A stretch of DNA of 64,000 nucleotides from Amphiscolops sp. MND2022 (lineage: Eukaryota), in NCBI GenBank assembly GCA_964187785.1, contig OZ076414.1, forward strand, positions 63,302,001 to 63,366,000. The letters run 5' to 3'. Below, piece by piece: positions 12,170 to 64,000 of the stretch. Within the stretch, counting starts at the first letter, position 1. Each line of letters begins with the position of its first letter. The notes beneath the pieces are model-generated. The model did no database searches. It saw only the letters and a list, made by a program, of their open reading frames with translations, and was not told the origin of the DNA. A program made the position numbers and the translations under genes.

Positions 12170-15100
12170 TTAGAGCCTGGGGCCACATTGATTTTCTGAT
12201 CTTGGGCCCCCGTCTGGGCCGAGGTCTGCTAGGATCTGTATTTCTGGGCCGTCGCTCAGGCCTTCGTTTTGAATTGCGGGATTTTCGGAGTTTATTTCTA
12301 CTGCATTATAGTATGCGAAATCTGGTTTCCAATTTGAAGCTGGGTTTCGTCGGAGATTGTAATGGGATTTTCGGGGGGATTTAGGAACGGGTGGACAATC
12401 TTCGGGTTCATCTTCGGTGTCTAGGTCTGGGTCATCTGTCTGGGTTTCCGGGTGGTTATTACTGCTTCCAGGTGCATGCTCTGGGTCGGGGTTCGAAGGG
12501 CTGGGGTATATTGGGTCAGTATCTGGTTCCTGAGCTTGGGGTATTACTTTGGGTTCGGGTGGTTGACTATTTGTGGGGTGGGTAGGGTGTTCTTGGTGAA
12601 GTTCCTGCCAAGCCATTGCGAAAAGGTCATCGTGCTGTATAGGCACTTCGGTGTCCTGCTGGAAATCTTGAGGCGCAACTGAGATGTCAGGCAGTTTGTG
12701 GCTGCTTGCGAATGGCCGTAGTCTGATTCTGTGCAGGATTTGGGTGAGGTTCGTTTGGAGTTTTCGGATTAAATAGTTATTATTGGGTAGGGTTTTGACC
12801 ACGATATATGGTCCCGTCCAAAGGTATTCCCGAAACGGCAGTTTTGTCGCTTGGCTATGCGCCTTTGGATGCAATGCATAGCAGTAGTCGTTTACTACCA
12901 GTGGGTTTGCTGATGCCTTTCTGTCATAATAGCGTTTATGACGGACATAGGCTTGCATCAGAGCTTGCTGGCTTTGGTTGAGGATCTGTTGTGTTTGTTG
13001 TAACACTTCCTCGGCTATCTCGTGGTTGATTGGGGTAGGGGGCTGCGGCTTGAGTCCATATTTCAGGTCGAGTACATTGTAGGGCACTCTTCCGTGAAAC
13101 ACTCTGCTGGGTTCGCATCCTAGTGATGTGTGGTATGAGGTATTGTAATTCAATACCGCCATCGGTAAGAATTGATGCCACATCGTGCGCCGTTCCCCTG
13201 TCATTATTTTGAGGCTTTCCTTCAGGGAGGCGTGAGTCCTCTCCAGGATGCCGATTGTCTGAGCGTGTTTCGTGGTGGCGTGTTTCAGTTGGATTCCCAG
13301 TGCAGCGGTGGTTTGTTGCATCGCTTCTGATATGAATTGGGATCCCTTGTCCGTTATGATTGTTGTGGGTAAATAGCAATGTCTGGTGATGATGTCCATT
13401 AGGACTCTGGTGACCGTTCTGGTGTCGATTCTAGCGACACTGTAGGCGAATAGGTACCTGGAGAAGACATCCATTGCTGTGATGACTGCGGTGTAACCTC
13501 CTGATGGGTCGTCGAAGGGGACTATGTCCATCTGGAGTGCGTCTTCGGGTCCCATTGCTATTTTTGACATGTCGATTAGTGGTGGTGTGATGGTGCTATT
13601 GGGTGTCCGCTTTGTTTGGGCGCATTCCATACACTGTGAGATATGGTTGGCTATCCGGGCGGCAAGTCCTGGGTAGTAGTATTTCTCGCGGCATTGTTGA
13701 ATGGTTTTGGCTATGCCCGGATGTCTTCCATATTTGCCATGATGGTGGTGTATGAATTCATTGACCAGTTGTTGGGGGAGCAGCACTTGTAAATATTTGA
13801 CCTTCCCCGTATCCCCAAAATATTGTCTATACAAGAGGCCGTCTTTGATGATGATCCTATCTTCTTGGGCTAGGTACTTCGCTGCTCTGGGGTCGTCATT
13901 GAGGAGTTGGGTGTCGTACGGCTCCTTCAATATTTTGAGCTTGAGATTTCTGAGGACAGGGTCCTGGTCCTGGTGTGGTCTGAGGCTGCGTGGAAAACTG
14001 TTTTCGTTGTACAGCTGGCGCCTTTGTTTCTGTTCCGGGTCTTGGATGCTGTTGCAGACCAGGGGTAGATTCTCCGTTTGGGGTTTTGGTTCAGTCGTAT
14101 CAGTTTGAGTATCAGTTGGTTGTTCTTGGGGGTTATAGATTTTCTTTCGGGCACTCTGTTTGCGTTCCCAGATGTCTTCCTCAGTTTCGGAATCGTCTTC
14201 TGGCAAGAAGTAAAATTGGTCCTCCTCATGTATATCTGAGGACTGGATGTTCACTTGGATGGGTGTTGTCTGGATATCTTCTCTGATTTGGAGAAGGACT
14301 TTTTCTTTGGGACTGATGTCCAATCGGGAGAGGAAGTCTGCCGCCGTGTTCATCCTTCCGGGCACATGGGCGATTTTGAAATGGAATTGAAGCACGAAAT
14401 CACAAGCGTTCCACAGGGAGGGTGGAATCATTTTGGTTTGAAAAAACCTTGTGACTGATTTATTGTCTGTTAGGACGATGGTTGGCTTAGAGGAACCCCA
14501 CAAGATGTGACTATACTCCATGAAGGCGAAATAGATGGCTAAAAACTCCTTGGCATAAATTGACAATTTCAATTGTGACGGAGAGAAAGTTTTAGATCCA
14601 AATGCCACAGGAGCATAGGTTTTCTTGGTGGAGGTGAGTTTCTGTTCTGGGTCCTCTTCGGTCATTAAGGCGTATCCTGCGTTCTTGAAATTGGCGTCAG
14701 TCATCAGGACATTTTGCCGGTTTGGCAGCGGCTGTTTGAGGTAGAGCCCGCACGCGTTGTCTAAGGACTTGTTGATGGCCTCAAAGTTTGCTATGAGCTC
14801 TTGGTCGATTTTGGCAGGCTTGTCAGATTTGATGAGTTCGTGGAAAGGTGCAATCTTCTCGGATAATCGAGGAATGTAATTTCTGTAATAGTTCACAAAT
14901 CCGATATATCGTTGAAGTCCTTTCTTCGTTCGGGGGAACTTGAGTGTTTGCAGATATTTCTGTATCTTGTGGCTCTGGGGTGCTACGCCTGATGGGGAGA
15001 TCGTCCGCCCAAGGAATTCGACTTCCTTGGCGCCGAACTGACATTTCGCCATTGTGAGCCGGAGTCCTGCAGCGCGGATGCATTGGAAGACCTCTCTCAA

Positions 15101-17752
15101 ATTGTTTTTCAACTCTTCAGGAGTGTTTGTGGCGATTCCAATGTCGTCCACGTATTGGGCGCATTTATCCGCCTTTATGGCTTTGTCCAGATACTCCCTC
15201 ATGAAGCTTGAGAAGGATGACAATGAGCGGCTCAGTCCCTGGGCTAGCCTGAGGTACGCGAACGTCCTGCTGGCGAAGTTGAAAGCTAGGAGTTGGACTG
15301 ACTTCTGGTCTGCCATCTGCAGTACGTGGTAAGCTTGTGAGCAATCAAGCTTACAAAACAACTTCTTGCCGGCGAGGTGTTGTGCCGCGTCCGTGAGGGT
15401 GCTGACCGGATGATTGTTATTGATGTACTCATCGGAAATCAGGTTCTTGATCTTTCTGAGATCTACTAGGAGCCGTAGGCGGCCGTTCGGTTTTCGTTGA
15501 GCGAAAATTGGGCTAGCGTACTTGCTGAACGGGAGGGTTGTTATAATCCCGAAATAATGCATTAATGCCAGTTCCACTGTCAAGTCCTCTTTCAAGTTAA
15601 TGGGGCAAGGCAGGCTTTGCGAGTAGACTGGGTCGTCTGTTTTTGGCGTGAGCTTGATTTTAAAGTCGTGGTTGATTCCGATGTCTAGTCGGTGCCTCGC
15701 GAAAATGTCATTGAACTCTATCAAGATTTCCTCAATGTCTTTTTGGTCATTTTCTGTTAATTGGGAATCATCCCATTTAAAGTTTTTGAGGAATGCCTCT
15801 CGGTCTTCAGCATTGTTATTGGGGTCCAGTTTCTGGATCTCTTCCAGTTCCTTGATTTCCCTCAGTATTCTGCTTTGAATCGGCGTGTGGGTACTAGGGT
15901 CGCCAGGATTGTCTGGTGTGGGGAACCAAAAGTTTTGACTCTGGGAAGGTTGGTCCGAAGTTTTCAGGAGTTCGTTGATGTATAGTATCGCATCTTCTGA
16001 GTCATCCTCCGTGAGTACTTTTAGTGCTGCGGTGTTGAGCGGTTTGAGCTCTTTGGCTTCTTCGGGCGACATAATTTTGAATTCAGCAACCGTCGTGTTC
16101 TTTTTTATTGTGTAGGGTGTGGGGGTAGTGTTGGTCACCCTTACCTCAATTTTCCTGTTGGAGGCTGTAGATATTGAGCTGGCTACTACTAGGGGGTCAC
16201 CGCTACAATGGTTGGTAGCTGGGTTGATGACACCGGTTGTGCCGATGGTAGACGTTATGTCTGTGTAGGCGGTGATTGTCTGGGTTGTTTCAGGAGGAAG
16301 GGTGATTGGATTCTTTACTTGTACCTTGTACATCTTTCGGTTGCGGGTGTACTCGTCGGTTTCAATTGAGTACGTTAGATGGGGGAAGTGGAGTAGGCCT
16401 TGGCTTACATCCAGAATGGCGCTGTTGTTTTTCAGGAATGTGAGACCAAGTATTGGGCCTGTTAGTCGTTTTGCAACGATGAACGTCTCTTTGAAATTCC
16501 AGTCCCCTATTTCAAATTGGAGGATTATTGTTTTGGTGGGGGCTTCAATGTCGCCGTTTGCGACTTGGAGTTTGAACGGGGGTGGTTCCATTTCTTTGAC
16601 TATGTCCTTGGGGGACATCTGAAGGATTTTGTTATAGTCGGTTTCGGAGATGCAGTTGACCAGCGCTCCAGAGTCAATGAGGGCGTCCAGGGTGAGGTCC
16701 TGGAAGTCCATTGGGGCGAATAGCATCTTCTTCTTTTTCTTAAGAGTCACCGCTGAGAAGATTGGGATGCATTCCTCTTTGGTGATTGGGTCTCTTGTGA
16801 GATATTCTGCAATCTGCGCCAGGGGGTAGGACTGGGGTTCGTCCTGGGTTGGTGTGTCGTTTACAGCACCTGAGGGTGATGCAGATTGCATGTTGGTTTC
16901 GTCAGTCGTAATGGGTCGAGGGTCCTCGACTTCATTTGCGGACTGACTTCTTGGGGAGGAGAGTGAGGACGACGCCTCGTTGTAGGAGAGAGGCTCTAGG
17001 AGTAGAGACCTTTTTATTCTCCTTGTTTGCGGTGTGGAGATTGTTATCTCCGTGTTGGTTGTGGTTTGGGTCAGGTCCACGGCTTCAGTCGTGGTCCTGC
17101 CGGTGAGATTTTCATGTTGGTGGCAGTCGGGTGCCACGTCCATTGTTGGGGATCGTATTCTTCCGGCTCTGATTAGGTTAACTGGTTGGTTTTTTGGTGG
17201 CGATTGTGGAGCCGTTGTTTGTGATCCGTGATCTTTGAGTATGGACTTGGGTTTGTTAGTCGACTCGTCGACTATTATTTCTGTCACTTGTTCCGCGTCC
17301 TGGTCGTATTCTGGGACTGGTTGGACGGTCTTCGGTCTGTGACGTGGTTCTGTCGAGATATTCATCCCAGTTTTCTTGATAAATTCCTCAAATGGCGTAC
17401 ACTCTTGTTGTTTAAAGGTTAGAGTCAATTGGTCGTAGATTTTGGGATTGTAGTAGGGGTCGCAGTTGTAGTCAGGGTCATGTATGTAGGTTTCAGGGGC
17501 AGTACTTTCGGGTAGTGGTCGTTTTGGGTTACTGTAGTCGGTTGGGTTGTCAAGGTACCATTGGGGGTAGTCCTTTTTAGTCATGTTTTGTCTATTTTGT
17601 TTGTTGAGCTTGTGAATCTGCCATCTTCGCTGCCAGTCGAGAGATGGTTCTTCATGTCGCTCGTCATTTTCTTCGTGGTCGTAGGTATTTGGGGGTTCTG
17701 ATGTTGTGAAATGTCGGGTTTCGACAATCTCCCCAAACTGAAGATGTGGCAA
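12170..17752 (-). CDS. pol: Element B Pol polyprotein (N-terminal extension, protease, RT, RNase H, integrase), 1860 aa open frame, expressed by -1 frameshift
   Basis: LIDSGA protease; QYVDDIGI RT; LMTDANF...ELLA-type RNase H region; HH...CMEC zinc finger; QMDIVP / ITDKG / ILERTH integrase DDE; WTGPYIV GPY/F motif. Confidence 0.96.
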   Translation of the reverse strand: MPHLQFGEIVETRHFTTSEPPNTYDHEENDERHEEPSLDWQRRWQIHKLNKQNRQNMTKKDYPQWYLDNPTDYSNPKRPLPESTAPETYIHDPDYNCDPYYNPKIYDQLTLTFKQQECTPFEEFIKKTGMNISTEPRHRPKTVQPVPEYDQDAEQVTEIIVDESTNKPKSILKDHGSQTTAPQSPPKNQPVNLIRAGRIRSPTMDVAPDCHQHENLTGRTTTEAVDLTQTTTNTEITISTPQTRRIKRSLLLEPLSYNEASSSLSSPRSQSANEVEDPRPITTDETNMQSASPSGAVNDTPTQDEPQSYPLAQIAEYLTRDPITKEECIPIFSAVTLKKKKKMLFAPMDFQDLTLDALIDSGALVNCISETDYNKILQMSPKDIVKEMEPPPFKLQVANGDIEAPTKTIILQFEIGDWNFKETFIVAKRLTGPILGLTFLKNNSAILDVSQGLLHFPHLTYSIETDEYTRNRKMYKVQVKNPITLPPETTQTITAYTDITSTIGTTGVINPATNHCSGDPLVVASSISTASNRKIEVRVTNTTPTPYTIKKNTTVAEFKIMSPEEAKELKPLNTAALKVLTEDDSEDAILYINELLKTSDQPSQSQNFWFPTPDNPGDPSTHTPIQSRILREIKELEEIQKLDPNNNAEDREAFLKNFKWDDSQLTENDQKDIEEILIEFNDIFARHRLDIGINHDFKIKLTPKTDDPVYSQSLPCPINLKEDLTVELALMHYFGIITTLPFSKYASPIFAQRKPNGRLRLLVDLRKIKNLISDEYINNNHPVSTLTDAAQHLAGKKLFCKLDCSQAYHVLQMADQKSVQLLAFNFASRTFAYLRLAQGLSRSLSSFSSFMREYLDKAIKADKCAQYVDDIGIATNTPEELKNNLREVFQCIRAAGLRLTMAKCQFGAKEVEFLGRTISPSGVAPQSHKIQKYLQTLKFPRTKKGLQRYIGFVNYYRNYIPRLSEKIAPFHELIKSDKPAKIDQELIANFEAINKSLDNACGLYLKQPLPNRQNVLMTDANFKNAGYALMTEEDPEQKLTSTKKTYAPVAFGSKTFSPSQLKLSIYAKEFLAIYFAFMEYSHILWGSSKPTIVLTDNKSVTRFFQTKMIPPSLWNACDFVLQFHFKIAHVPGRMNTAADFLSRLDISPKEKVLLQIREDIQTTPIQVNIQSSDIHEEDQFYFLPEDDSETEEDIWERKQSARKKIYNPQEQPTDTQTDTTEPKPQTENLPLVCNSIQDPEQKQRRQLYNENSFPRSLRPHQDQDPVLRNLKLKILKEPYDTQLLNDDPRAAKYLAQEDRIIIKDGLLYRQYFGDTGKVKYLQVLLPQQLVNEFIHHHHGKYGRHPGIAKTIQQCREKYYYPGLAARIANHISQCMECAQTKRTPNSTITPPLIDMSKIAMGPEDALQMDIVPFDDPSGGYTAVITAMDVFSRYLFAYSVARIDTRTVTRVLMDIITRHCYLPTTIITDKGSQFISEAMQQTTAALGIQLKHATTKHAQTIGILERTHASLKESLKIMTGERRTMWHQFLPMAVLNYNTSYHTSLGCEPSRVFHGRVPYNVLDLKYGLKPQPPTPINHEIAEEVLQQTQQILNQSQQALMQAYVRHKRYYDRKASANPLVVNDYCYALHPKAHSQATKLPFREYLWTGPYIVVKTLPNNNYLIRKLQTNLTQILHRIRLRPFASSHKLPDISVAPQDFQQDTEVPIQHDDLFAMAWQELHQEHPTHPTNSQPPEPKVIPQAQEPDTDPIYPSPSNPDPEHAPGSSNNHPETQTDDPDLDTEDEPEDCPPVPKSPRKSHYNLRRNPASNWKPDFAYYNAVEINSENPAIQNEGLSDGPEIQILADLGPDGGPRSENQCGPRL

Positions 17753-17754
17753 AG

Positions 17755-17764
17755 TTAGTTTTTT
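17755..17764 (-). other. -1 ribosomal frameshift slippery site A AAA AAC immediately before gag stop TAA
   Basis: Minus strand CAG TCA AAA AAC TAA; the -1 frame reads KKLTLPHLQ into pol. The same heptamer-stop is in element A (543-534, 1963-1954). Confidence 0.85.
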
Positions 17765-19317
17765 GACTGGGTTTGGTTTTGAGGTTGAGTTTGAGGTTGG
17801 GTAGTCACTTGCCTTGGAGGTATGAATCCCATGTGGTCAGTTGTCTGGTTGTGGTACTGGGTTTGGGTTTGGGGTTGGGTTGTCATTGAAAGGGGAGGTA
17901 GGTAGCCCATTTGGCTGGTTGTTTGATTTTGATATGGCGGTTGGGTCACTGGTAGATTGGTTTTGGCATACTGACCTTGTGACTGTGGTGGTAGCGGTAT
18001 GCTGTTTGAGGACGTAGCCTTGGGGGTTTTCCACCATTGTGGTCGATTTGCCCAGTTGGCGCCTGAGTAGCATTCTTCAGTTGTGTGGCTTTTCTTGCCA
18101 CAAGTTTCGCATGGGTTAACTATTTTGTTGGGCACTCTGTTACCCCGATTGCGAGCTTCGCGGGCTACTTTTCTGCAATTTTTGACAACATGGCCGGATT
18201 GCCCACATCCGTAGCATGGTCCTGATGGTTTGGGGGGATTCGGAGCTTGTTGTGGGTCTTGCACGTCAATTTGGTGCACTCCTGTTATGTTGCTCTCGTT
18301 TGGTGCCAACAGTTCGTTTAGCTCCATCTCTCTTTCTAGGTGTTCGACCATCATTTCGTACGATTCAGTTTCTAACCTTGCCTGGTTTAGCACTCGTTTT
18401 AGGTGGGTCGGCATTTTGGCGTAGAAGGAGGTCTCAATGAACTTGGGGGCGTCATCTCCGTATGCTTCTTGGGCCAGTTTTTGATACTGCTCCAAGAAAT
18501 CTTGGAAAGTTTGTTGGGATGGGTCAAAATAGAGCTGATTCCATTTGCAGCGGGCTGTTGCGATAGATTGGGGGCGGACATATCGTCGTCTGAAGGTTGC
18601 TATGATGTCCTCCAGGCTGGCACGGTTTGTGTCAGTCATGTTGCGGTAGGTCTGCAGGGCGTCATCCCTGAGTAAGGAATGGAAATAGTGTATTTTCTCT
18701 TCTTCGGATATGTTGGGATACACTTTGAGGCTAGTCATAAAAAGGTCTTCGAAGTGTTCAAACTTGTCGTTTTTACCTTTGAAAGTAGGCATTGTTGTTG
18801 ACATCGCTTTTGGCAGTCTAGGGAGCCCGATATTTTGTTGGGTTACATTCTGTAGCGATTCTAGTAGCTTTTCCACTATGTGGTCCGGGTATTTCTGGTT
18901 GGGGGGCGGTAGGCTTGATGATCGGGGCGGCACTTCTGCTTGAGGGAACACTCCTGTCACCATGTGTTGACCCTGCGATGGGTGCAACTCGTTCAGTATG
19001 GATGGCCTTGATGTTGAGGCTTGATTTTCGGTCTCGTCGGAATCTAAGGCGAGGTTTTCACAATTGGGTGGTTGGCCGGACAGTGAGTCTATTTTCGAGG
19101 ATAAGTTCTCGATCATTTTCAAAATCTCTCTCTGCCCAACTTCGGCATCTCTTATTCTTCTAGTCACTGACTTTTCAATTTTCTCAGATAACTCAGAGAA
19201 GTCTCGGTCGGAAATACTGGGAACGTTTTCAGTTCTCAAACTAGTTGCTTCTGACTCGCCTATCGAACTAGTCACTGAATCTCTCCTGGCCTTTCTTTTG
19301 GAGGATCTTTCAGGCAT
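17755..19317 (-). CDS. gag: Element B Gag, 520 aa, two CCHC knuckles; first 118 codons encoded inside the 5' LTR
   Basis: CYGCGQSGHVVKNC and CETCGKKSHTTEEC knuckles; the same N-terminus is duplicated in the 3' LTR (5035-5394). Confidence 0.93.
   Translation of the reverse strand: MPERSSKRKARRDSVTSSIGESEATSLRTENVPSISDRDFSELSEKIEKSVTRRIRDAEVGQREILKMIENLSSKIDSLSGQPPNCENLALDSDETENQASTSRPSILNELHPSQGQHMVTGVFPQAEVPPRSSSLPPPNQKYPDHIVEKLLESLQNVTQQNIGLPRLPKAMSTTMPTFKGKNDKFEHFEDLFMTSLKVYPNISEEEKIHYFHSLLRDDALQTYRNMTDTNRASLEDIIATFRRRYVRPQSIATARCKWNQLYFDPSQQTFQDFLEQYQKLAQEAYGDDAPKFIETSFYAKMPTHLKRVLNQARLETESYEMMVEHLEREMELNELLAPNESNITGVHQIDVQDPQQAPNPPKPSGPCYGCGQSGHVVKNCRKVAREARNRGNRVPNKIVNPCETCGKKSHTTEECYSGANWANRPQWWKTPKATSSNSIPLPPQSQGQYAKTNLPVTQPPYQNQTTSQMGYLPPLSMTTQPQTQTQYHNQTTDHMGFIPPRQVTTQPQTQPQNQTQSKN
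18949..18962 (-). other. Primer-binding site of element B (TGGTGACAGGAGTG), resembles tRNA-Leu-type PBS
   Basis: Directly abuts the LTR-terminal CA at 18963. tRNA identity is inferred from similarity to TGGTGTCAGGAGTG and was not verified. Confidence 0.85.
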
Positions 19318-53210: not shown

Positions 53211-54499
53211 TTTTTAAACCTGTATATAATTGCAGCTTTTTTGAAACTTGTTTTTACTGGCCGACTGGGATAGTGGCTGGTATGAGTAGTTGGTTGGTTG
53301 TTTCTAGTTGTTACTGGTCTATTGGGATAGTGGCTGGTATGGTTTCCTCCTTTCGATGCAGACCACTGGTGTGTGTCTTCTCCTCCAACATGATGACACA
53401 CATGGAACTTGATTAATGACGACCATCCATGATTTCTGATAGTGGAAAAAAAGCAAACAAATTCTGTCAAAAAAAAACGATTGTTAAAAAGCACTGCCAG
53501 CTGTGATTTTGGAGAAATTGTCACAATTTGTAACAATGTATCACAATTACGCGATGTGAAGTGCGTTGGTTAAAAATGTTTTTCTTATTCAGATTTTTGA
53601 TGCATGCGCTTTGCGCTGGTGATTTTTATGTACGAGTTTAATCAAGAAAAGAAATATAATTCTCAATTCACTTTCGATTTACTTTCTGAAGTAATTATGT
53701 GAGTTCGATCAGAATAATTATAAGTCTCAATTATAGTCTAATTTGTGAACTCTTAGTTCACTTCTCGTCTAATTTCTAATTCCAAATCTAAAAGTAGTCT
53801 CGTACTTAAAATTTTCGCGACTGTGCCTTCCTACACTTCAACAAAGGTAGTCTCAGGTGTGAGTTCGGATGGAAGGACTTTATTTCTACGACCCGTGAGA
53901 AAAGTGTATTTTGGACTATGAATATGTAAATTGAATCTTTCTTTATTTATATTAAAGTTGTAATAAATGTCACTCATACAAAAGCAAAGTGCACAAATAA
54001 GCATGAACAAAAAGAATATAATTAAATCAAACTTGAAATCTATCTTTAAATAATAAGAGATAAGTTGTTAGAAAAAGAATTAGTTATTAAGTCGTTTTAT
54101 GTTTTACCAGATCAAGAGGTGAAGCCTCTTTATAAGATGCAGCGATAGCTTGCAAGGTGTTTATAGTCCACTGATTGTCACGGACTGAAAAGAGAGCTAC
54201 TTGCTTCTCTTGATTAAAGGACAACAGATTGTTGTACTGGTTTTATAGAGTGCTATACGGCTACTCTTTGTCTCAAATTGAGAACAGTTCGACTTGAAGA
54301 GTCAAACAAAAACTAAGTTATTTAAGTCTCTTATAACCCAGCTGAAGCTATGGTTCTTGGTTTAGAGTCAGTATATCTACCAGACTTTAGTTTAGAGTCT
54401 ACTATAAAGCAGAGACTTTTCAATCTTTGTTAAACAAAGACGGTATGATAGCTTCTGTTCGAAGTCAAAAGTCAATTAGAACTCCAACGTAAGAGAAGA

Positions 54500-54985
54500 T
54501 TTGCTTTAACGATGAAAGCAGATTTTTGTTTTGTTTTAGATTGAAAATATTATAAGACTAAGACTTAGCTTGCCTTTACTTGAAGGCGGATTAGCAAATA
54601 GTTAAAGATTTAAATTGCTTCAATATTAAAGCAGAGTTAAAAAGCTTAAGACTTAACTTGTTTTGGCTCGGAAATATGCTAAGATAAAAATGCTTTACTT
54701 GAAAGCACGTTGGAAATAGTCTAAGACAAATTTGCTTTAACTAGAAAGCAGGCTTGACAAAAGTTTAAGTTAAAATTGCTTCACTCGAAGCAGAGTTGAA
54801 AATCGTCTAAGACAAATTTGCTTTAACTAGAAAGCAGGCTTGACAAAAGTTTAAGTTAAAATTGCTTCACTCGAAGCAGAGTTGAAAATCGTCTAAGACA
54901 AATTTGCTTTAACTAGAAAGCAGGCTTGACAAAAGTTTAAGATAGATTTGCTTTACTTGAAGCAGTGTTGAAAATAGTCTAAGAC
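54500..54985. repeat. Tandem repeat: ~43-bp subunits, two exact 86-bp dimers (54719-54890)
   Basis: GTCTAAGACAAATTTGCTTTAACTAG recurs at 54719, 54805, 54891. Confidence 0.9.
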
Positions 54986-55258
54986 AAGACTGAGCCAAAA
55001 CTTATAAAACTTTAAGAAGGTTGAAAACTTAGGCAAAAAGCACATAGACTAAAATGAGTTAAAGTTAAAGTTGAGAAAATATCTTAGAAAAATGAAAGCT
55101 CCAAAAAGAAAATTGAAATGGTTTAACTAACAAATGTTGCGCCGCGCTGAAGATGGGGATTGAACCCGTGAATGAAGATTGTAGAGTTGAAGATGAGTGA
55201 TTTATCAATTTAGTATTTTGCCAAAGGAAGAGCTCTAAGAGTTGAAAATTTGGTCTGC

Positions 55259-55431
55259 TTTTATACTAAATTTGACCGCTTCGTCAACCAGTAAAATTGA
55301 ATCACTGTTGTGATTGGTTGACGAGCATGACGTCATATGACGTCAAGTCATATGATCTGACATACGAGATCATTTTGTATGTGTATTTCGTGGGCGAAGC
55401 GTCCACGAGAAAATGATGTCATTTGACGTCA
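55259..55431 (-). promoter_or_regulatory. LTR core promoter: three CRE palindromes, CCAAT box, TATA box
   Basis: TGACGTCA at 55328, 55338 and 55424; CCAAT (minus) 55313-55317; TATAAAA (minus) 55259-55265. Confidence 0.7.
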
Positions 55432-55702
55432 TGACCAAATATGGAATGTAACCAGCGTCGCTGGACAAAGGGAGTGAACACGTTCGAGCGTGTTCAGAAT
55501 TCAGAGCTGAGTGAGAAAATAACAAAGATAAAACTGCGCAAGTCACAAAAGATAAAACTACATGTTACAAGTTTTGAGTTTATTTCTTTTTGAGTTATCG
55601 TAGTAAGTTTCTTTCTTTTTATTTGCCATAAGTCGCACACGACATCTCACCCGGGTTTCAAGATTGAAGAAATTGTAACAGGGGTACACAGGTTGTTGGC
55701 GT

Positions 55703-57148
55703 TCATGTTGATTCTTCTAGGTTAACTTCGATGAACATAGTGTCATTCAGGATGAATGGGGAGTTGCTTTTGAAGAGTTGGCTGTGTGGGATCAGGAAGG
55801 GGAAGCATATGCTCGGGTTCCCATAGCTTGTACAAGGTCGTATAAAACAAGCTGAATTTTGGTTGTCTTTTGGATCTACTATTTTAGTCCAGGTATCATT
55901 AGGCTCACTCAAATTGATTACATTAATTCGGAAGATTAATTTGAAAGGCCAGGAGAGAATTGGGTCGAACTCGCCAGGAAGGATGTTAATAACTAGTGAA
56001 GCACTCTCTCCAGTAGCAGGAGAGCATCCATAAGGGTAGAGTTTCATATCAAAGCGATACCCATGAGTTGATGTGTAGAATGGAGGGCTGTGAAAATTAC
56101 AAGGTATTTTTGGGTGCGGGTCGACGCCTTTTTGCCTTTCTAGTTCTGCAGCCTTTGCGTTATCAAACATAAGGCTGAAGGAGCTAATTCTCCAGATTAG
56201 CTTTTTGTCTCGTCCACAATCAATGCTGTGAATACGATCATAAAGATCCATTGTTAGACGTTTGAGGGGTTTCAGTTCAGCAAGTCGTCGGTGTATATCT
56301 GTTGATTCGGGCTCGGTTGAAGAAGGGATAGGAAGAGGAGTATTTACAGGTTGTTCAACAGTAGGTGTTATTATCTTCTTTTGAAGGTTTTCGACGACAA
56401 TTTGGAGTTGCTGAATGGTTCTGTCCTGTTGTCTTCGTAGGTTCTTTTCAAGCTCAAGTTGCTCGAAGAGGTTTGCAACTTGCAATTGTGTTGCGTGTAT
56501 GTATTGAGCATGTTTAAGATTGCTGAGTGGGAACTTGCTAATGAGCATCTTCATCTGGGCAAGGTCGCTGTCGGTGCATGTAGGTTGGCTGAGATTTGTT
56601 ATTTGATTTTGTAGTGTTGTAATTTCATTTTCCATGGCGGCTAATCTAAGGTTGAGCTCATCTAATAATTGTTCTTCATTTTGTTTTCAAATGAAAGCAG
56701 AGATAGCCCGAAGGGGTACTGATAGCCTCTGGTTTTTAAGAACGGTGTTTTCAATAGTAAATTCTTGTCTTTTTGAGTCCCAGAAAATAATTCTCCACTG
56801 ATTGACTTCTTTTTTGAGAGTATAGTTGAGGTTATAATGAAATCTGGGGTTTCTGGTTATCGAGTATTTTTGAGCAGCTTTTTCGCTTCTTTTTTGCTTT
56901 TCTAAAGCTTGTTTCAATGAGTATTGTGTTTTCTTCTTTTTAATACTACCGTTAAAGACAAATGTATTAGAGCTATTCGGAGGGGTAACAGTGGCGTCTA
57001 AAATTGTTTGATTGAGTGGTAGTTGAGGAATAGGAGATTCACATGAAGTGAGGTCAAACATTGGAAAATCGAGTATGTCCTTCTCTGTTAGAGTGTCTTT
57101 TGAAAGATGAAGTTCCAGATCTGACGAAAGAGAGGTGTGGTCGGTCAT
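55703..57148 (-). CDS. TRAF-like protein (N-terminal region + coiled coil + MATH/TRAF-C domain), ~481 aa, one in-frame TGA at 56687-56689
   Basis: KLIWRISSFS, HSPPFYTSTHGYRFDMKLYPYG, GEFDPILSWPF, SACFIRP, NDTMFIEV match the TRAF MATH consensus. ORFs 57148-56687 and 56635-55703 share a frame with 17 open codons between; intronless. Confidence 0.85.
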
Positions 57149-57174: not shown

Positions 57175-59310
57175 TTAAATTGGTGATATTGTATCTAATC
57201 GATTAGATGCTGGCAGACAATTTATGACGGGGTAGATGTGTTCAGAAGCATCTTGATTGTCGGTACTGAATGTTGTCATGGGAATATCTTTTGTAGTAGG
57301 ATTGAACATTGAATGGGAGATTGAAACCATAAAAAGATTATAACTTGCTGATAGTAGAATTTTACCAAATCCAACAGATGCTCCAGTAAGTCGGTGTATT
57401 TCAAAGGCTCTGACAATAGTTACTGTCACATCAATAATTAGTTTTATAAAAAGGAAAACTGCAAACCAAATACCACATTTTTCTAGCCAATATCCAATTG
57501 TGCCAAATGTTTGTCTAAATTTGCTTTCGAAGTAACCAGGAGATATCATGTTATCAACAAAGAAATCCATTTTGGGTGCGTAGTATGTATATCCTTCAGG
57601 TCCTTTCTTTGATTGTGAAGGAACAATGAGCTTTCTTGTGAATTTCTGCAAAGCATTCTTTGATGCAGAACTCATGAGTATGTTGTCCCAAAATTCAGTT
57701 AGCTGGCCTTTCGTGTACATTCCAGCGTTGATTGATTGAGGGAACTGGTCCCTTGTGAATGGTGCTACATCTTTTGGCGAAAAGATAGCAGGTCTATCTC
57801 TATGTGTGATCTGTGGTGTTAGTGAGAACCAAGAGTTCTTATCGTCCATGTCCATTTGAAAAAGGTTCTTTATGTGATCCGAACAGTTCTGAGGCATTGC
57901 ATCAGGTAAAGTTTGCCTTGTGATGGGATCTACAAATTTGATTTGTCCTTTGTAGAAGATAGGTATTTTATCGTAGCACTCGTTCATCGTATGAAGAGGT
58001 GATTTGACTAGGGGACAAGAGTAAAGCCATGCAAGGCTTCCATCAGTTTCTAAGAACATTGATCTGTTTCCAGTCAACATATATCCAGCTAGTCTTGAGT
58101 TCTCAAGTGAAAGCATCAGAATAGTGAGTATGTGCGATCGTTCTTGTTCACACTGATTTTTCAAAAGATGAAGTTCTGAGGCTTTGAGTGCTCTGGAGCT
58201 CTCAAAGAAAAGGTAGTCCAGTTTAGTTCCCTGTTGTAATTCGTAGTCCATGTTCAACCATGTTCCATAGTATGGGTCTGATTGATAGTTACTAGCAACC
58301 CAGAGTTTACTATGGCCTGGGTCATCTCTTTCTTGATCATAAGGGGAATAGTGCATCTTGTGAACTCTGTCCTCTTGTTGAATCATATTTCGTCCAGTTT
58401 TCATGTCAAATCCACCATAAAGGATAGCAACAAACAAAGATTCATAGGTTGTAGGATATACATCTGATGGTTTATTACAAAGTTTTTGTGGTCTGTTTTT
58501 GATTTCAAAGAGATATTTGTTTTCTGAATCGTTCTTACTAACAATATAGTATTGATCGTCATTTTTGATCATATTTACGTACTCCTCTTTCAGTACGGTG
58601 AGAATACAATTGTCTGGATTATCCCATACATAAGCATATGGGTCAAGAGAAGTGCTGTCACATCCCAGTTCGTCTAGCTTGCAGGGTAGAGGTTGTCCAT
58701 TTTTATTCATTATAGTCCCGTCTCTGAGTTTGACGTTCAGAGTAATATCTTGGATGTGAGTTTCAAAAGTGTCTTTTTCAATCCATTCAAAACCATCGCA
58801 TTCATTTTTGAATGTGTCGTCTGCATCGCCATTCCATCTAAGATGTTGTTCAATTATCCCTTTCTTCATTGTAATTTGATGATTTAGTAGAGTTATTGGT
58901 GATCCTTCAGCTACAAGTCTGCATTGTGCAGGCGATAAATCGAGATAGGAGGTAATCGTCTTTTGTTTGATATCGATGCTGGAATGGTCATGCATTCCAC
59001 AATAGAATCTGTTTCTTTAATGTTTGACGCTGCATATGGTAGCGTTAATTTCTGTTCGAAAATGTTTTGTGTACATCTTGACTTTGGCATGGCTCATGTC
59101 TATGTTCTCAGGAGCCACGTTACAAGGTTTGACTTGGTTGAGAGAGTAGAGATTGTTTTCTGACATTTCACTGCAATCGTAATGTGAGACTGTGACTGTA
59201 GGTGCGATATCATCCAGTATGGGCTGCTTCTTGTTGGGGTAGATGAGATTTATTGAAAGCATCAAAATGAAAATAACAAAATATTTACAGTATATCTTTT
59301 CACTATCCAT
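57175..59310 (-). CDS. env: Envelope glycoprotein, chuvirus-G-like (class III fusogen type), ~711 aa, one in-frame TAA at 59017-59019
   Basis: N-terminal hydrophobic signal, HYDC...YSLNQVKPC, FYCGMHDHSS, many Cys, C-terminal TM (CGIWFAVFLFIKLIIDVTVTIV). The two track ORFs are in frame with 7 codons between. Confidence 0.8.
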
Positions 59311-59583
59311 TATCTACTAATGAAAACGGTACTCCGAAAATACTATAAAGGGTTTAGGAATAGAAAGGTAGACTTGCTAACCTTGAGATGAAGAGAGTAT
59401 TTTGCTTTCGATGAAGCAGTGAGAAGGGCGGTTTTGCTTTCAATAGAGCAGCGAGAAATCTGTAGCACTTGGCAATACAGGTGATTTGTTCAAATTGAAC
59501 TGAAAAGAGAGCAAGAATGAATTCTGCTGAAAATTGACAATTTAGTCAAAGACAAGTGGATGATAGTCCTTTTCGTTGTAAAT

Positions 59584-60312
59584 ACACGTCTAAATACCGT
59601 GTCTTCCCGCTTAAGAAAAGTGTTCTGTTTGAAACAGACAAAAGTGAGTAGTAGCGAGGAGTTATTTATAGACGGCAGAGTTTGACACTTAGGTCTTTAC
59701 CGTCTCTTCTTGCAAGGTAATGTAGCACACGTCTAAAAACCGTGTCTTCCTGCTAAAGAAAAAGGATCTCTTTGAGACCAAGAAGAAAGGAAAATAAGAG
59801 CAGGGAGTTATTTATAGACGGCAGAGTTTGATACTGAGATCTTTACCGTCTCTTCTTGCCTGAGAAAGAGAGAGTTTAAAAAAAAGTTAAATAAAGGCAA
59901 GGTTACACGTCCAAAACCCGTGTCTTCCTACCAAAAGAAAAAAGTGATCTGATTTGCCAGTTCAGAACAATGAAAATAATAAAGGTAGGGAGTTATTTAT
60001 ACACGGCAGAGTTTAATGCAAACCGTCGTTTGATCTTTACCGTGTCTTTGTCAAAGTTTGTGACAAAAATTATAATATACGTCTATACACCGTATCTTCG
60101 TTGAGCTATGCAACGGAGTTATTTATACACGGCAGAGATTGATGCTGAGATCGTTACCGTGTCTTCTTGCAAGGATAAAATTGAATACGCACGTCCAAAA
60201 CCCGTGCCTTCCTGCTGATAAGAACTGATCTGATTTAGATCAAAAAAGAAAAAGAGCAGGGAGTTATTTATACACGGCAGAGTTTGATACTGAGATCTTT
60301 ACCGTGTCTTGC
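59584..60312. ncRNA. Array of five structured repeat units (three hairpins + fixed TTATTTAT linker) of unknown function
   Basis: Units start at 59584, 59727, 59905, 60077 and 60189; compensatory substitutions in all three stems (see findings). Confidence 0.7.
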
Positions 60313-60405
60313 ACCTAAAAAGAAGAAGTTGAATGAAAGGTTTAATTAATCACAGTACACAGTATTAAAATGAAAAGATAAAATGAAAAGATGAACGGAT
60401 GTAGA

Positions 60406-60933: not shown

Positions 60934-61254
60934 TTATGCTGCTGTTGTGTCGGCTAGCTCTCCAAGGATATGGAGTTGAAATTGGGTGATGTGTGATTCT
61001 GGTTCTTCAGCGTAATTATCCAAAGCCTCAGATAGTTGTTCTCGGAGAAATCTATTACTAGCGATTTCTAAAGTGGAGACTTTGCTTTTATTATTTACAG
61101 GGTGTATTGTTATCAAAATGAAACTGGGTTTAGTAAAGGACCACTTGAGTCTGATGATATTGAAGTTTTCAGTGACGCCTGCTGGAGTAGTTATTTTAAA
61201 CGGACAGTTGAAATTGACTTCTTCAATACATTCGTTATTAAGGTGAAAGTTCAT
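60934..61254 (-). CDS. Small ORF paralog 2, 106 aa, unknown function
   Basis: Clear similarity to 61257-61610 (FNCP.KITTP.G..ENF.I..L.WS; LHVLGEL/LHILGEL). Confidence 0.75.
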   Translation of the reverse strand: MNFHLNNECIEEVNFNCPFKITTPAGVTENFNIIRLKWSFTKPSFILITIHPVNNKSKVSTLEIASNRFLREQLSEALDNYAEEPESHITQFQLHILGELADTTAA

Positions 61255-61256
61255 AT

Positions 61257-61610
61257 CTAGTTGCTTTTGTCAATGTTTTCTGGATACATCAATGGGGTTA
61301 TTGTATCAGTTAGTTCCCCAAGAACGTGGAGGTGATACTGTTCAACGTGTTGTTCAGGATTCCGAAGGTAATCGTTTAGTGCTTTAGAAAGTTGGATTTC
61401 AAGAAAACTATTTTCTGCTACTTCAAAGGTAGTTACTTTATTTTTGTTGCTAATGGGGTGTAGTTTCACGGAGATGAAACAAGGTGATATTTGTGACCAC
61501 CTAAGTTTGGTAATTATAAAGTTTTCGGAGTTGCCTGAAGGGGTTGTTATCTTCCAAGGGCAGTTGAATTCTACTTCATCAATTTCGCCTTCATCAAAAA
61601 TTATGTCCAT
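61257..61610 (-). CDS. Small ORF paralog 1, 117 aa, unknown function
   Basis: ATG directly after the upstream TAA; paralogous to the two downstream ORFs. Confidence 0.75.
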   Translation of the reverse strand: MDIIFDEGEIDEVEFNCPWKITTPSGNSENFIITKLRWSQISPCFISVKLHPISNKNKVTTFEVAENSFLEIQLSKALNDYLRNPEQHVEQYHLHVLGELTDTITPLMYPENIDKSN

Positions 61611-63424: not shown

Positions 63425-64000
63425 TTAATCTTTATATCCCTTTCTTTCCAAGTTTCGTAGTGAGCTATCGGGATGAGAGCGCTTGTATTTTGCTTTTACT
63501 TTCGATGTAAGATCAGCAACTTTATTTTTCTTTTTTGGCGATGAAGACGTAGATTGTTCAGCTTCATGAAATTGCGGCGTTGTCCTCAAAATAGTAGGAG
63601 CACGAATAGGCATAGGAGTCATAGGCAGTATAGGAGTTTGTAGCGGCGGCAATGGTGAAATCGTTAAATTTTGATAGTTGTGATCATCATTGGTAGGCGT
63701 AGAAGGAGATTGAATTCCTGAATCAGCATTAGGCGAACGTGCAGCGTGATTTTTGCTCATTTCTTGAATATTGGTGTTTTCTTGTAGCGGCGATATGATA
63801 AAAGGCATTACATCTAGGGAACATCTTTGTTGATTTGAATTGTAGTCATTTATCTGTGACTGCACTAAGTGTTTGTAGAAATCACTATCTTTTGTTATAG
63901 GCGGCGCGTAGTTAGTGATTAAAGGAGGGAGTCTTTCCTCTTTAGGAAAGTATTCAATCAGGTGATTCCGATGAGTAACTTTGATATTATCCGGGTTAGC
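63425..64000 (-). CDS. pol: C-terminus of element F Pol (integrase tail), partial
   Basis: Frame open from the window edge: VTHRNHLIEYFP (typical end of the GPY/F region), then a Pro/Ser-rich tail ending SLRNLERKGYKD. Confidence 0.7.
   Translation of the reverse strand, partial: ANPDNIKVTHRNHLIEYFPKEERLPPLITNYAPPITKDSDFYKHLVQSQINDYNSNQQRCSLDVMPFIISPLQENTNIQEMSKNHAARSPNADSGIQSPSTPTNDDHNYQNLTISPLPPLQTPILPMTPMPIRAPTILRTTPQFHEAEQSTSSSPKKKNKVADLTSKVKAKYKRSHPDSSLRNLERKGYKD

Follow-up and report, generated by a model that had tools for sequence, protein, structure and literature searches.

Retroelements of the Ty3/gypsy group that carry an env gene have only recently been shown to be widespread in early-branching animals, and to our knowledge nothing is known of how splicing, export, packaging or env expression is regulated in them. 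Here, we describe a non-coding array of five tandem hairpin units upstream of env in an element of this kind, which lies within a 64,000-nucleotide stretch of DNA from Amphiscolops sp. MND2022 (contig OZ076414.1, positions 63,302,001 to 63,366,000 of the forward strand; this whole stretch is hereafter called the window). The carrier of the array is an env-carrying endogenous retrovirus or long terminal repeat (LTR) element of the Ty3/gypsy type (Metaviridae-like), and the array is a real, undescribed cis-acting element. Metazoan env-carrying Ty3/gypsy elements, or errantiviruses, have been reported from cnidarians among others (eLife 2026, PMC13524379), and the window element, with its Ty3/gypsy gag-pol and viral fusion glycoprotein, fits this group. 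A term search of that paper (PMC13524379) found tandem repeats, MATH/TRAF genes, splicing and promoters not mentioned, and the array and the extra genes of the window element are outside the published description. As a conserved, structured, copy-number-variable non-coding module in the gap between pol and env, the array offers a testable handle on the regulation of these elements.

Several described systems share part of this organization. The constitutive and RNA transport elements (CTE/RTE type) of simple retroviruses and intracisternal A-particle elements are likewise cis-acting structured RNAs found where intron-containing RNA needs export, and they share conserved unpaired nucleotides displayed on helices, internal repetition, and an activity that scales with copy number. 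They are, however, single long hairpins that lie 3' of env and bind a host export receptor, whereas the array consists of five tandem multi-hairpin units 5' of env and has no sequence or Rfam similarity to them. The response elements of the Rev/Rex/Rem type are likewise multi-stem RNA platforms in incompletely spliced RNA, in elements with small accessory proteins, but they lie within or after env and have no homology to the array, and the 117-residue open reading frame (ORF) of the window element has no recognisable fold. Retroviral packaging and dimerisation signals also consist of short stem-loop clusters with conserved loops and covarying stems that are missing from spliced messages; they usually reside in the 5' leader rather than the pol-env gap, and five to ten tandem copies would be atypical. 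The G-rich constant loops in arrays of related elements may resemble nucleocapsid-binding loops. The spumavirus internal promoter and the enhancer repeats of retroviral LTRs similarly provide an internal regulatory region before 3' genes, a TATA motif and tandem copies, but such DNA elements have no stem covariation, and the TATA motif of the array is not kept in a sister lineage. Finally, the Su(Hw)-site insulator of Drosophila gypsy, which is another Ty3/gypsy element with an env gene, is likewise a tandem array of short motifs within non-coding sequence; it comprises 12 short protein sites in the 5' untranslated region and has no hairpins, whereas here hairpin modules stand before env.

The array occupies positions 59584-60330 of the window and comprises five head-to-tail units of 143, 178, 172, 112, and 142 nt. 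An earlier reading of this DNA, made from the letters alone and referred to here as the original prediction, had described each unit as three hairpins (H1, H2, and H3) with a linker between H2 and H3. The five units were found with these motifs where it had placed them, and all the stem variants that it quoted for H1, H2, and H3 are correct. A fourth, variable hairpin of the CTTGC..GCAAG type (H4) lies in the spacers. The units are given below with the matches of a covariance model built from H3 and the linker.

59584..59726, minus strand: array unit 1, at the 3' end of the array as read on the coding strand; H1 59584-59602, H2 59603-59661, linker 59662-59669, H3 59670-59705, spacer/H4 to 59726; model match 59656-59708, minus strand, 75 bits
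59727..59904, minus strand: array unit 2; H1 59727-59745, H2 59746-59807, linker 59808-59815, H3 59816-59851, H4 with a long loop to 59904; model match 59802-59854, 76 bits
59905..60076, minus strand: array unit 3; H1 59905-59923, H2 59924-59992, linker 59993-60000, H3 60001-60045 (loop longer by 9 nt), H4 variant to 60076; model match 59987-60048, 64 bits
60077..60188, minus strand: array unit 4, the shortest; H1 60077-60095, H2 60096-60118 (7-nt loop), linker 60119-60126, H3 60127-60162, the variant nearest the 51-nt repeats of the related locus L006; model match 60113-60165, 77 bits
60189..60330, minus strand: array unit 5, at the 5' end of the array as read on the coding strand; H1 60189-60207, H2 60208-60263, linker 60264-60271, H3 60272-60307; model match 60258-60310, 78 bits

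The five units were aligned, and the structure of the original prediction was scored on this alignment (24 pairs, 117 cells). Standard pairing is present in 98.3% of the cells. Between units, seven of the 24 pairs have changed on both sides and none on one side only, and the observed pairing, the double-change count, and the covariation score were each reached in 0 of 500 shuffles. When the 3' partners were slid by 1-3 columns, pairing fell to 38-54%. The H2 loop ranges from 7 to about 51 nt and the linker TTATTTAT is invariant in all five units, both as originally proposed. The spacing of the complementary arms also varies (6, 9, or 24-33 nt), which fits hairpin stems and does not suit half-sites for a dimeric DNA-binding protein. 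A 23-nt core that runs from the last bases of H2 through the linker into H3 has five occurrences in the window, where shuffled sequence predicts 0.00. An invariant repeated core of this sort could mark a tandem array of transcription factor sites, yet the stem covariation and the variable arm spacing point to a single-strand structure. The double substitutions, the arm spacing of 6-33 nt, and the variation in loop length together argue for a single-stranded fold rather than double-stranded protein sites.

The hairpins are more elaborate than first described. Most H2 loops contain an apical mini-hairpin, and the unit is itself an internal duplication in which [H1-H2] resembles [H3-H4]. The AGAG/CTTT extension that the original prediction added to H3 pairs in four of the five units; it does not form in unit 4 or in the 51-nt repeats of L006. 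Covariation is seen instead in a competing 3-bp apical stem, GAY/RTC. Flanked by this apical stem and by an outer stem that also covaries, H3 contains an asymmetric internal loop that is conserved. A peptide-coding role for the array was considered and rejected, as the unit lengths are not multiples of three and no ORF is present.

The history of the array was traced in eleven related element loci, all from three metagenome-type assemblies (ERZ25074608, ERZ26859043, and ERZ25067548) whose env clusters comprise hundreds of members; the window element itself corresponds to locus L001 (contig ctg181773, ENA assembly ERZ25074608). The same five units are present in the same order in L002 (env 96% identical) and L004 (env 83% identical), and the five-unit array therefore predates these insertions. 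Between L001 and L002, 1.5% of stem positions, 2.5% of linker positions, and 4.7% of loop and spacer positions differ; the corresponding values for L001 and L004 are 6.7%, 2.5%, and 14.1%. Stems and linker have thus changed two to three times more slowly than loops. L006, from the same assembly, has an env 61% identical to that of the window element, intact and 702 residues long, from an env cluster of 133 members, and it carries about ten tandem 51-nt units that each consist of H3 and the linker only. An antisense ORF called over the L006 array was rejected as an artefact of the 51-nt period. In L009, which comes from a third assembly and whose env is 64% identical, the module stands alone, without tandem repetition; it comprises H1, H2, and H3, has the same non-Watson-Crick position in H2, and is followed by a strong splice-acceptor-like sequence. 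Across lineages the module is therefore found in 1, 3, 5, or about 10 copies.

The H3/linker core is strongly conserved. Over 45 nt, window unit 4 and L006 are about 91% identical, compared with 67-76% for coding DNA of the two lineages, between which BLAST aligned no other non-coding DNA. The original prediction had proposed a covariance-model search, and one with the model of H3 and the linker gave 21 matches of 58-78 bits in 259 kb, all of them in pre-env arrays, and nothing above about 18 bits elsewhere. The window has TATAAATAAC as its linker, whereas L006 has GGTAAATAAC and L009 has TATAAACAAC; linker variation is limited to the first two bases and one pyrimidine position, and from this comparison the conserved core of the linker is TAAAYAAC and not TATA. 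Exact-pattern scans of the JGI metagenomes and IMG/VR for the H3/linker core gave no matches. Relatives of env with 53-68% identity (L012, L016, L018) are present in the JGI coral-associated metagenome contigs Ga0126342 and Ga0126343, the latter described as Cyphastrea sp. (bioRxiv 10.1101/391565), which is a hint, short of proof, that the clade has a scleractinian (stony coral) host.

Where this module is missing, lineages carry hairpin arrays of other types at the same site. In L003, L005, and L019, the region before env contains hairpins in which at least five different stems close a constant TGGTG loop, whereas only 0.4% of TGGTG sites elsewhere are flanked by five or more complementary bases; a second covarying hairpin type is also present in these three loci. 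L007, L008, and L010 share a common module with a helix that has changed on both sides between the three lineages, and L010 adds a tandem run of four hairpins that show compensatory changes around a constant, U-rich loop. When the window array was aligned in both orientations with the arrays of these six loci, local alignment scores stayed within the shuffle range, and a similarity noted by eye (GTGTCTTCCCG) between array types was rejected as chance on the same grounds. The distant env relatives L014 and L015 (32-41% identity) have no conspicuous pre-env arrays. L007, L008, and L010 additionally have an ORF of about 200-230 residues on the strand opposite gag-pol-env, between pol and the small ORFs (L007 6135-6731, L008 3565-4260, L010 3633-4265; 31-39% identity, E down to 3e-28). 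The L007 sequence (17516 nt) is a circular 17.5-kb contig at 14x coverage, which could be an assembly effect caused by the LTRs or an extrachromosomal circle.

As judged from these sequence comparisons, selection acts on the pairing: the stems are maintained through double substitutions and change at a lower rate than the loops between copies, and the core is kept across lineages. This agrees with the original prediction, which had read the paired changes as selection on structure. The alternative is a neutral internal satellite, with palindromes maintained mutationally by template switching in quasi-palindromes or by gene conversion between units. Tandem repeats of small palindromes are common in the element, including an 86-nt repeat in the LTR and others in relatives, and the stem changes among units are all complete doubles without one-sided intermediates. 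The same two non-Watson-Crick positions, however, stay uncorrected in every unit. The lower rates of change in stems and linker, an H3/linker core better conserved across lineages than coding DNA, and the unrelated hairpin arrays at the same position in other lineages also speak against a neutral origin, which we regard as highly improbable.

The position of the array relative to the genes bears on what it might do. The genes around it all lie on the minus strand, and the features next to it are as follows.

60934..61610, minus strand: two tandem paralogous small ORFs of 117 and 106 residues, conserved across the clade and located in every case on the 5' side of the array
59311..59583, minus strand: non-coding stretch from the array to env, with two 3'-splice-site-like pyrimidine-tract/CAG sequences
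57175..59310, minus strand: env, a class III-type viral fusion glycoprotein (Pfam PF24664), with one in-frame stop and no frameshift

The array was originally placed just upstream of env, and on the coding strand it does precede the env ATG, at a distance of 273 nt; the plus-strand description given at the time is antisense to all genes of the element. All lineages examined have pyrimidine-tract/CAG sequences in the interval from the array to the env ATG, in some cases after branch-point-like motifs, and these sequences are putative 3' splice sites. On the 5' side of unit 5 on the coding strand, a pyrimidine tract is followed by AG|GTGCA. Since it sits between the small ORFs and the pre-env pyrimidine-tract/CAG sequences, the array would be confined to RNA that is unspliced for env.

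With somewhat less than even confidence, we favor a reading in which the array serves the unspliced transcript as a multimerised RNA module for protein binding, with a role in export, packaging, or splicing control. In sequence, export and packaging roles would look alike, as would the nuclease-block and IRES-like roles that the original prediction had listed. Starting from the structure, conservation, and position of the array, we infer the RNA strand, the protein binding, the splice sites, and the specific function. The array would act as RNA on the full-length coding-strand (window minus) transcript, where its repeated hairpins would display unpaired nucleotides in the H3 internal loop and the UAAAYAAC linker. 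The strong conservation of this loop and linker suggests sequence-specific recognition of the displayed nucleotides, and the units could jointly form a multivalent platform for a host factor or for a small protein of the element itself, with which the range of copy numbers fits as a multivalent or dosage-type binding platform. Being present in unspliced RNA and missing from the spliced env message, the array would mark intron-containing genomic RNA for export, packaging, or splicing control. It would function like the transport and response elements of retroviruses while standing outside all those families.

The same location admits a processing signal for transcripts of the small ORFs, in which each hairpin, A/U-rich hexamer, and U-rich tract would form a repeated 3'-end or polyadenylation site, or in which the units would be splice-site decoys that restrain env splicing. 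The array immediately follows the small ORFs in every case, beginning 7 nt past the stop codon in L003, and U-rich sequence follows the linker on the coding strand. The L006 and L003 units end in pyrimidine-tract/CAG sequences, and 5'-splice-site-like GT motifs recur. Against this, repeated active polyadenylation sites would shorten the genomic RNA, the hexamer differs between lineages, and the processing sites are candidates read from sequence. We consider a role of this kind quite improbable.

Several points weigh against a protein-binding RNA module. H3 is kept mainly as sequence, and of its own nine pairs two covary. Between copies, substitutions in the stems mostly break pairs, and no new compensatory events were seen; these pair-breaking changes are as expected from decay after insertion, and the compensatory signal therefore stems from the older divergence among the five units. 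The 117-residue ORF gives no hint of RNA binding: it has no Pfam match, and a model of the protein (four strands and two helices, predicted local distance difference test score 73) has no fold match in the PDB (best E 0.06). The coding-strand RNA role and the splice sites are themselves putative. The choice of strand and the linker sequence also count against such a module, and each leads to an alternative of its own.

The coding strand is the only strand that is certain to be transcribed, but the plus (antisense) strand folds slightly better, in five of eight lineages by free energy and in six of eight by z-score. For the window array the free energies are -192.7 kcal/mol (plus) and -182.1 kcal/mol (minus), and the gain of whole-array folding over shuffles is moderate (z -3.3 to -3.9 for plus, about -2.4 for minus). 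The T.G pair that was originally described as constant in H2 is indeed constant, in all five units and in L009; it is a G.U pair on the plus strand and a C.A mismatch on the coding strand. These differences would follow if the functional strand were the window plus strand, with the array folding in an antisense transcript or in single-stranded minus-strand cDNA during reverse transcription, and the conserved antisense ORF of some relatives fits transcription from that side. In the window element, however, this ORF is not detectable and no antisense gene or promoter is evident, and in the relatives the ORF lies 1.3-1.7 kb away, past the small ORFs. Wobble pairs scattered through other helices (the apical stem of unit 2, an L010 hairpin, and an L005 hairpin) favor the coding strand, and a second plus-strand G.U pair, in AGAG/CTTT, sits in a non-conserved helix. 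Function on the plus strand thus appears distinctly unlikely.

The linker raises the alternative that the array acts as DNA and, in the role of internal promoter or enhancer, drives env and the two genes that follow, with the linker as a TATA-like or A/T-rich protein site accompanied by flanking factor sites. The original prediction had noted this option, and the linker does form a perfect TATA motif, TATAAATAA, on the env-coding minus strand in all five units. A TATAAA-type motif also stands right behind a hairpin in L009, L007, L008, and L010, and the linker is the slowest-evolving part between copies. Three downstream genes have to be expressed and could need an internal promoter, and the antisense ORF in relatives together with these several genes suggests internal transcription units. 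Tandem amplification with variable copy number is typical of retroviral enhancers. As a lead, TAAAYAAC may resemble a forkhead-type site. The TATA motif is nevertheless lost in all of the roughly ten L006 units (nearly all of which read GGGTAAATAAC), although the 702-residue env is intact, while H3 and the rest of the linker are kept there, which weakens the promoter option. Furthermore, the arrays of L003, L005, and L019 have no TATA motif, and the position about 30 nt downstream of each window TATA falls in the most variable loop, that of H2, without a conserved initiator-like motif. Double substitutions that keep complementarity and arm spacings of 6-33 nt are unexpected for double-stranded sites. 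An action as DNA therefore seems unlikely, although it deserves to be taken seriously.

No described RNA family accounts for the units. The 4227 models of Rfam 15 were run at gathering thresholds on the window, L002, L003, and L006, with no matches, and with permissive filters (E<=10) on a 3-kb stretch around the array, where the only matches were four at chance level (E 4.7-9). The original prediction had regarded the element as new and unlike hammerhead, hepatitis delta virus (HDV), twister, or pistol ribozymes; hammerhead, HDV-like, twister, pistol, and hatchet were all absent from the matches on either strand in this permissive E<=10 search. It had also listed a ribozyme among the possible roles, and each unit could be pictured as a small self-cleaving ribozyme in retrozyme-like tandem repeats, since the units are tandem, about 145 nt long, and built of several helices. 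No ribozyme or other Rfam family matches on either strand, however, and one hairpin with the linker is all that the minimal conserved unit of L006 contains. We find such a ribozyme hardly credible.

A broader form of the protein-binding reading, which is rather unlikely but would have wide consequences, is an independently evolved circuit of the complex-retrovirus kind. In such a circuit, a multimerised RNA response element in the env intron would be read by an orphan small protein or by a host export or packaging factor, and hairpin arrays of unrelated sequence would have replaced one another between lineages while doing the same job. Should the array prove to be an RNA response element, control after transcription in the style of complex retroviruses would reach far beyond the vertebrate retroviruses.

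The window element is larger and more complex than the described members of its group, with two small ORFs, an ORF after env, a TRAF-like gene, and, in some relatives, an antisense ORF. Its order is LTR, gag-pol, two small ORFs, array, env, 153-residue ORF, TRAF-like ORF, LTR, and the parts outside the region described above are as follows.

63425..64000, minus strand: 3' end of pol (C-terminal part of the integrase), from the L001 gene table
56687..57148, minus strand: 153-residue ORF directly after env, at the same position in relatives
55703..56635, minus strand: TRAF-like ORF, the last gene before the 3' LTR, with a coiled coil and MATH/TRAF-C and no RING or zinc-finger part
53555..55642, minus strand: 3' LTR (approximate bounds), L001 13354-15441, at the end of the L001/L002 homology and present twice in L004

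Most of gag and pol of L001 lies beyond the window end. L001 and L002 share a domain order of PEG10-type capsid, RVT_1, RT_RNaseH, Integrase_H2C2, and rve, followed by the PF24664 env. In L001 gag-pol is split over five called ORFs, whereas in L007 pol is one 1795-residue ORF with gag as a separate ORF, which suggests that pol of the window copy has at least three interruptions.

A 16-nt motif (plus strand ATGAAAACGGTACTCC) lies at 59320-59335, about 10-25 nt 5' of the env ATG, and is nearly invariant in L001, L003, L004, L005, L009, and L019, while the flanking non-coding DNA diverges. The TRAF-like ORF has its top PDB sequence matches in the C-terminal domains of TRAF5, TRAF4, TRAF1, TRAF3, and TRAF2 (E 1e-14 to 1e-10), followed by TRAF6. 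The gene holds its place in seven other loci of the group (L002, L003, L005, L006, L008, L009, L010), which gives it the look of a host signalling domain that was captured for the clade as a whole.

Homology between L001 and L002 stops at about window position 53555. The adjoining 2.1-kb segment is assigned as the LTR because it is present twice in L004, a copy with gag-pol deleted. L004 (4397-16208) consists of LTR, small ORF, array, env region, and LTR, and since it lacks gag-pol, the array and the env part persist in a non-autonomous derivative. The LTR contains promoter-like motifs, namely several palindromes of the TGACGTCA type, a CCAAT motif, and TATAAAAG, followed by the 86-nt tandem repeat of small TGCTT..AAGCA hairpins; two small hairpins of the same type lie 5' of env at 59400-59457. 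Tandem hairpin repeats are also found in the LTRs of related elements.

All large ORFs scanned in the rest of the window that matched a Pfam family derive from transposons, and none of the ORFs scanned was clearly a host gene; a tRNA scan of the window found none. Positions 12170-19317 (minus strand) hold an unrelated BEL/Pao-type gag-pol with a 1860-residue pol ORF and an adjacent gag ORF, and further fragments in the window derive from an integrase, an aspartyl protease, and a DDE transposase.

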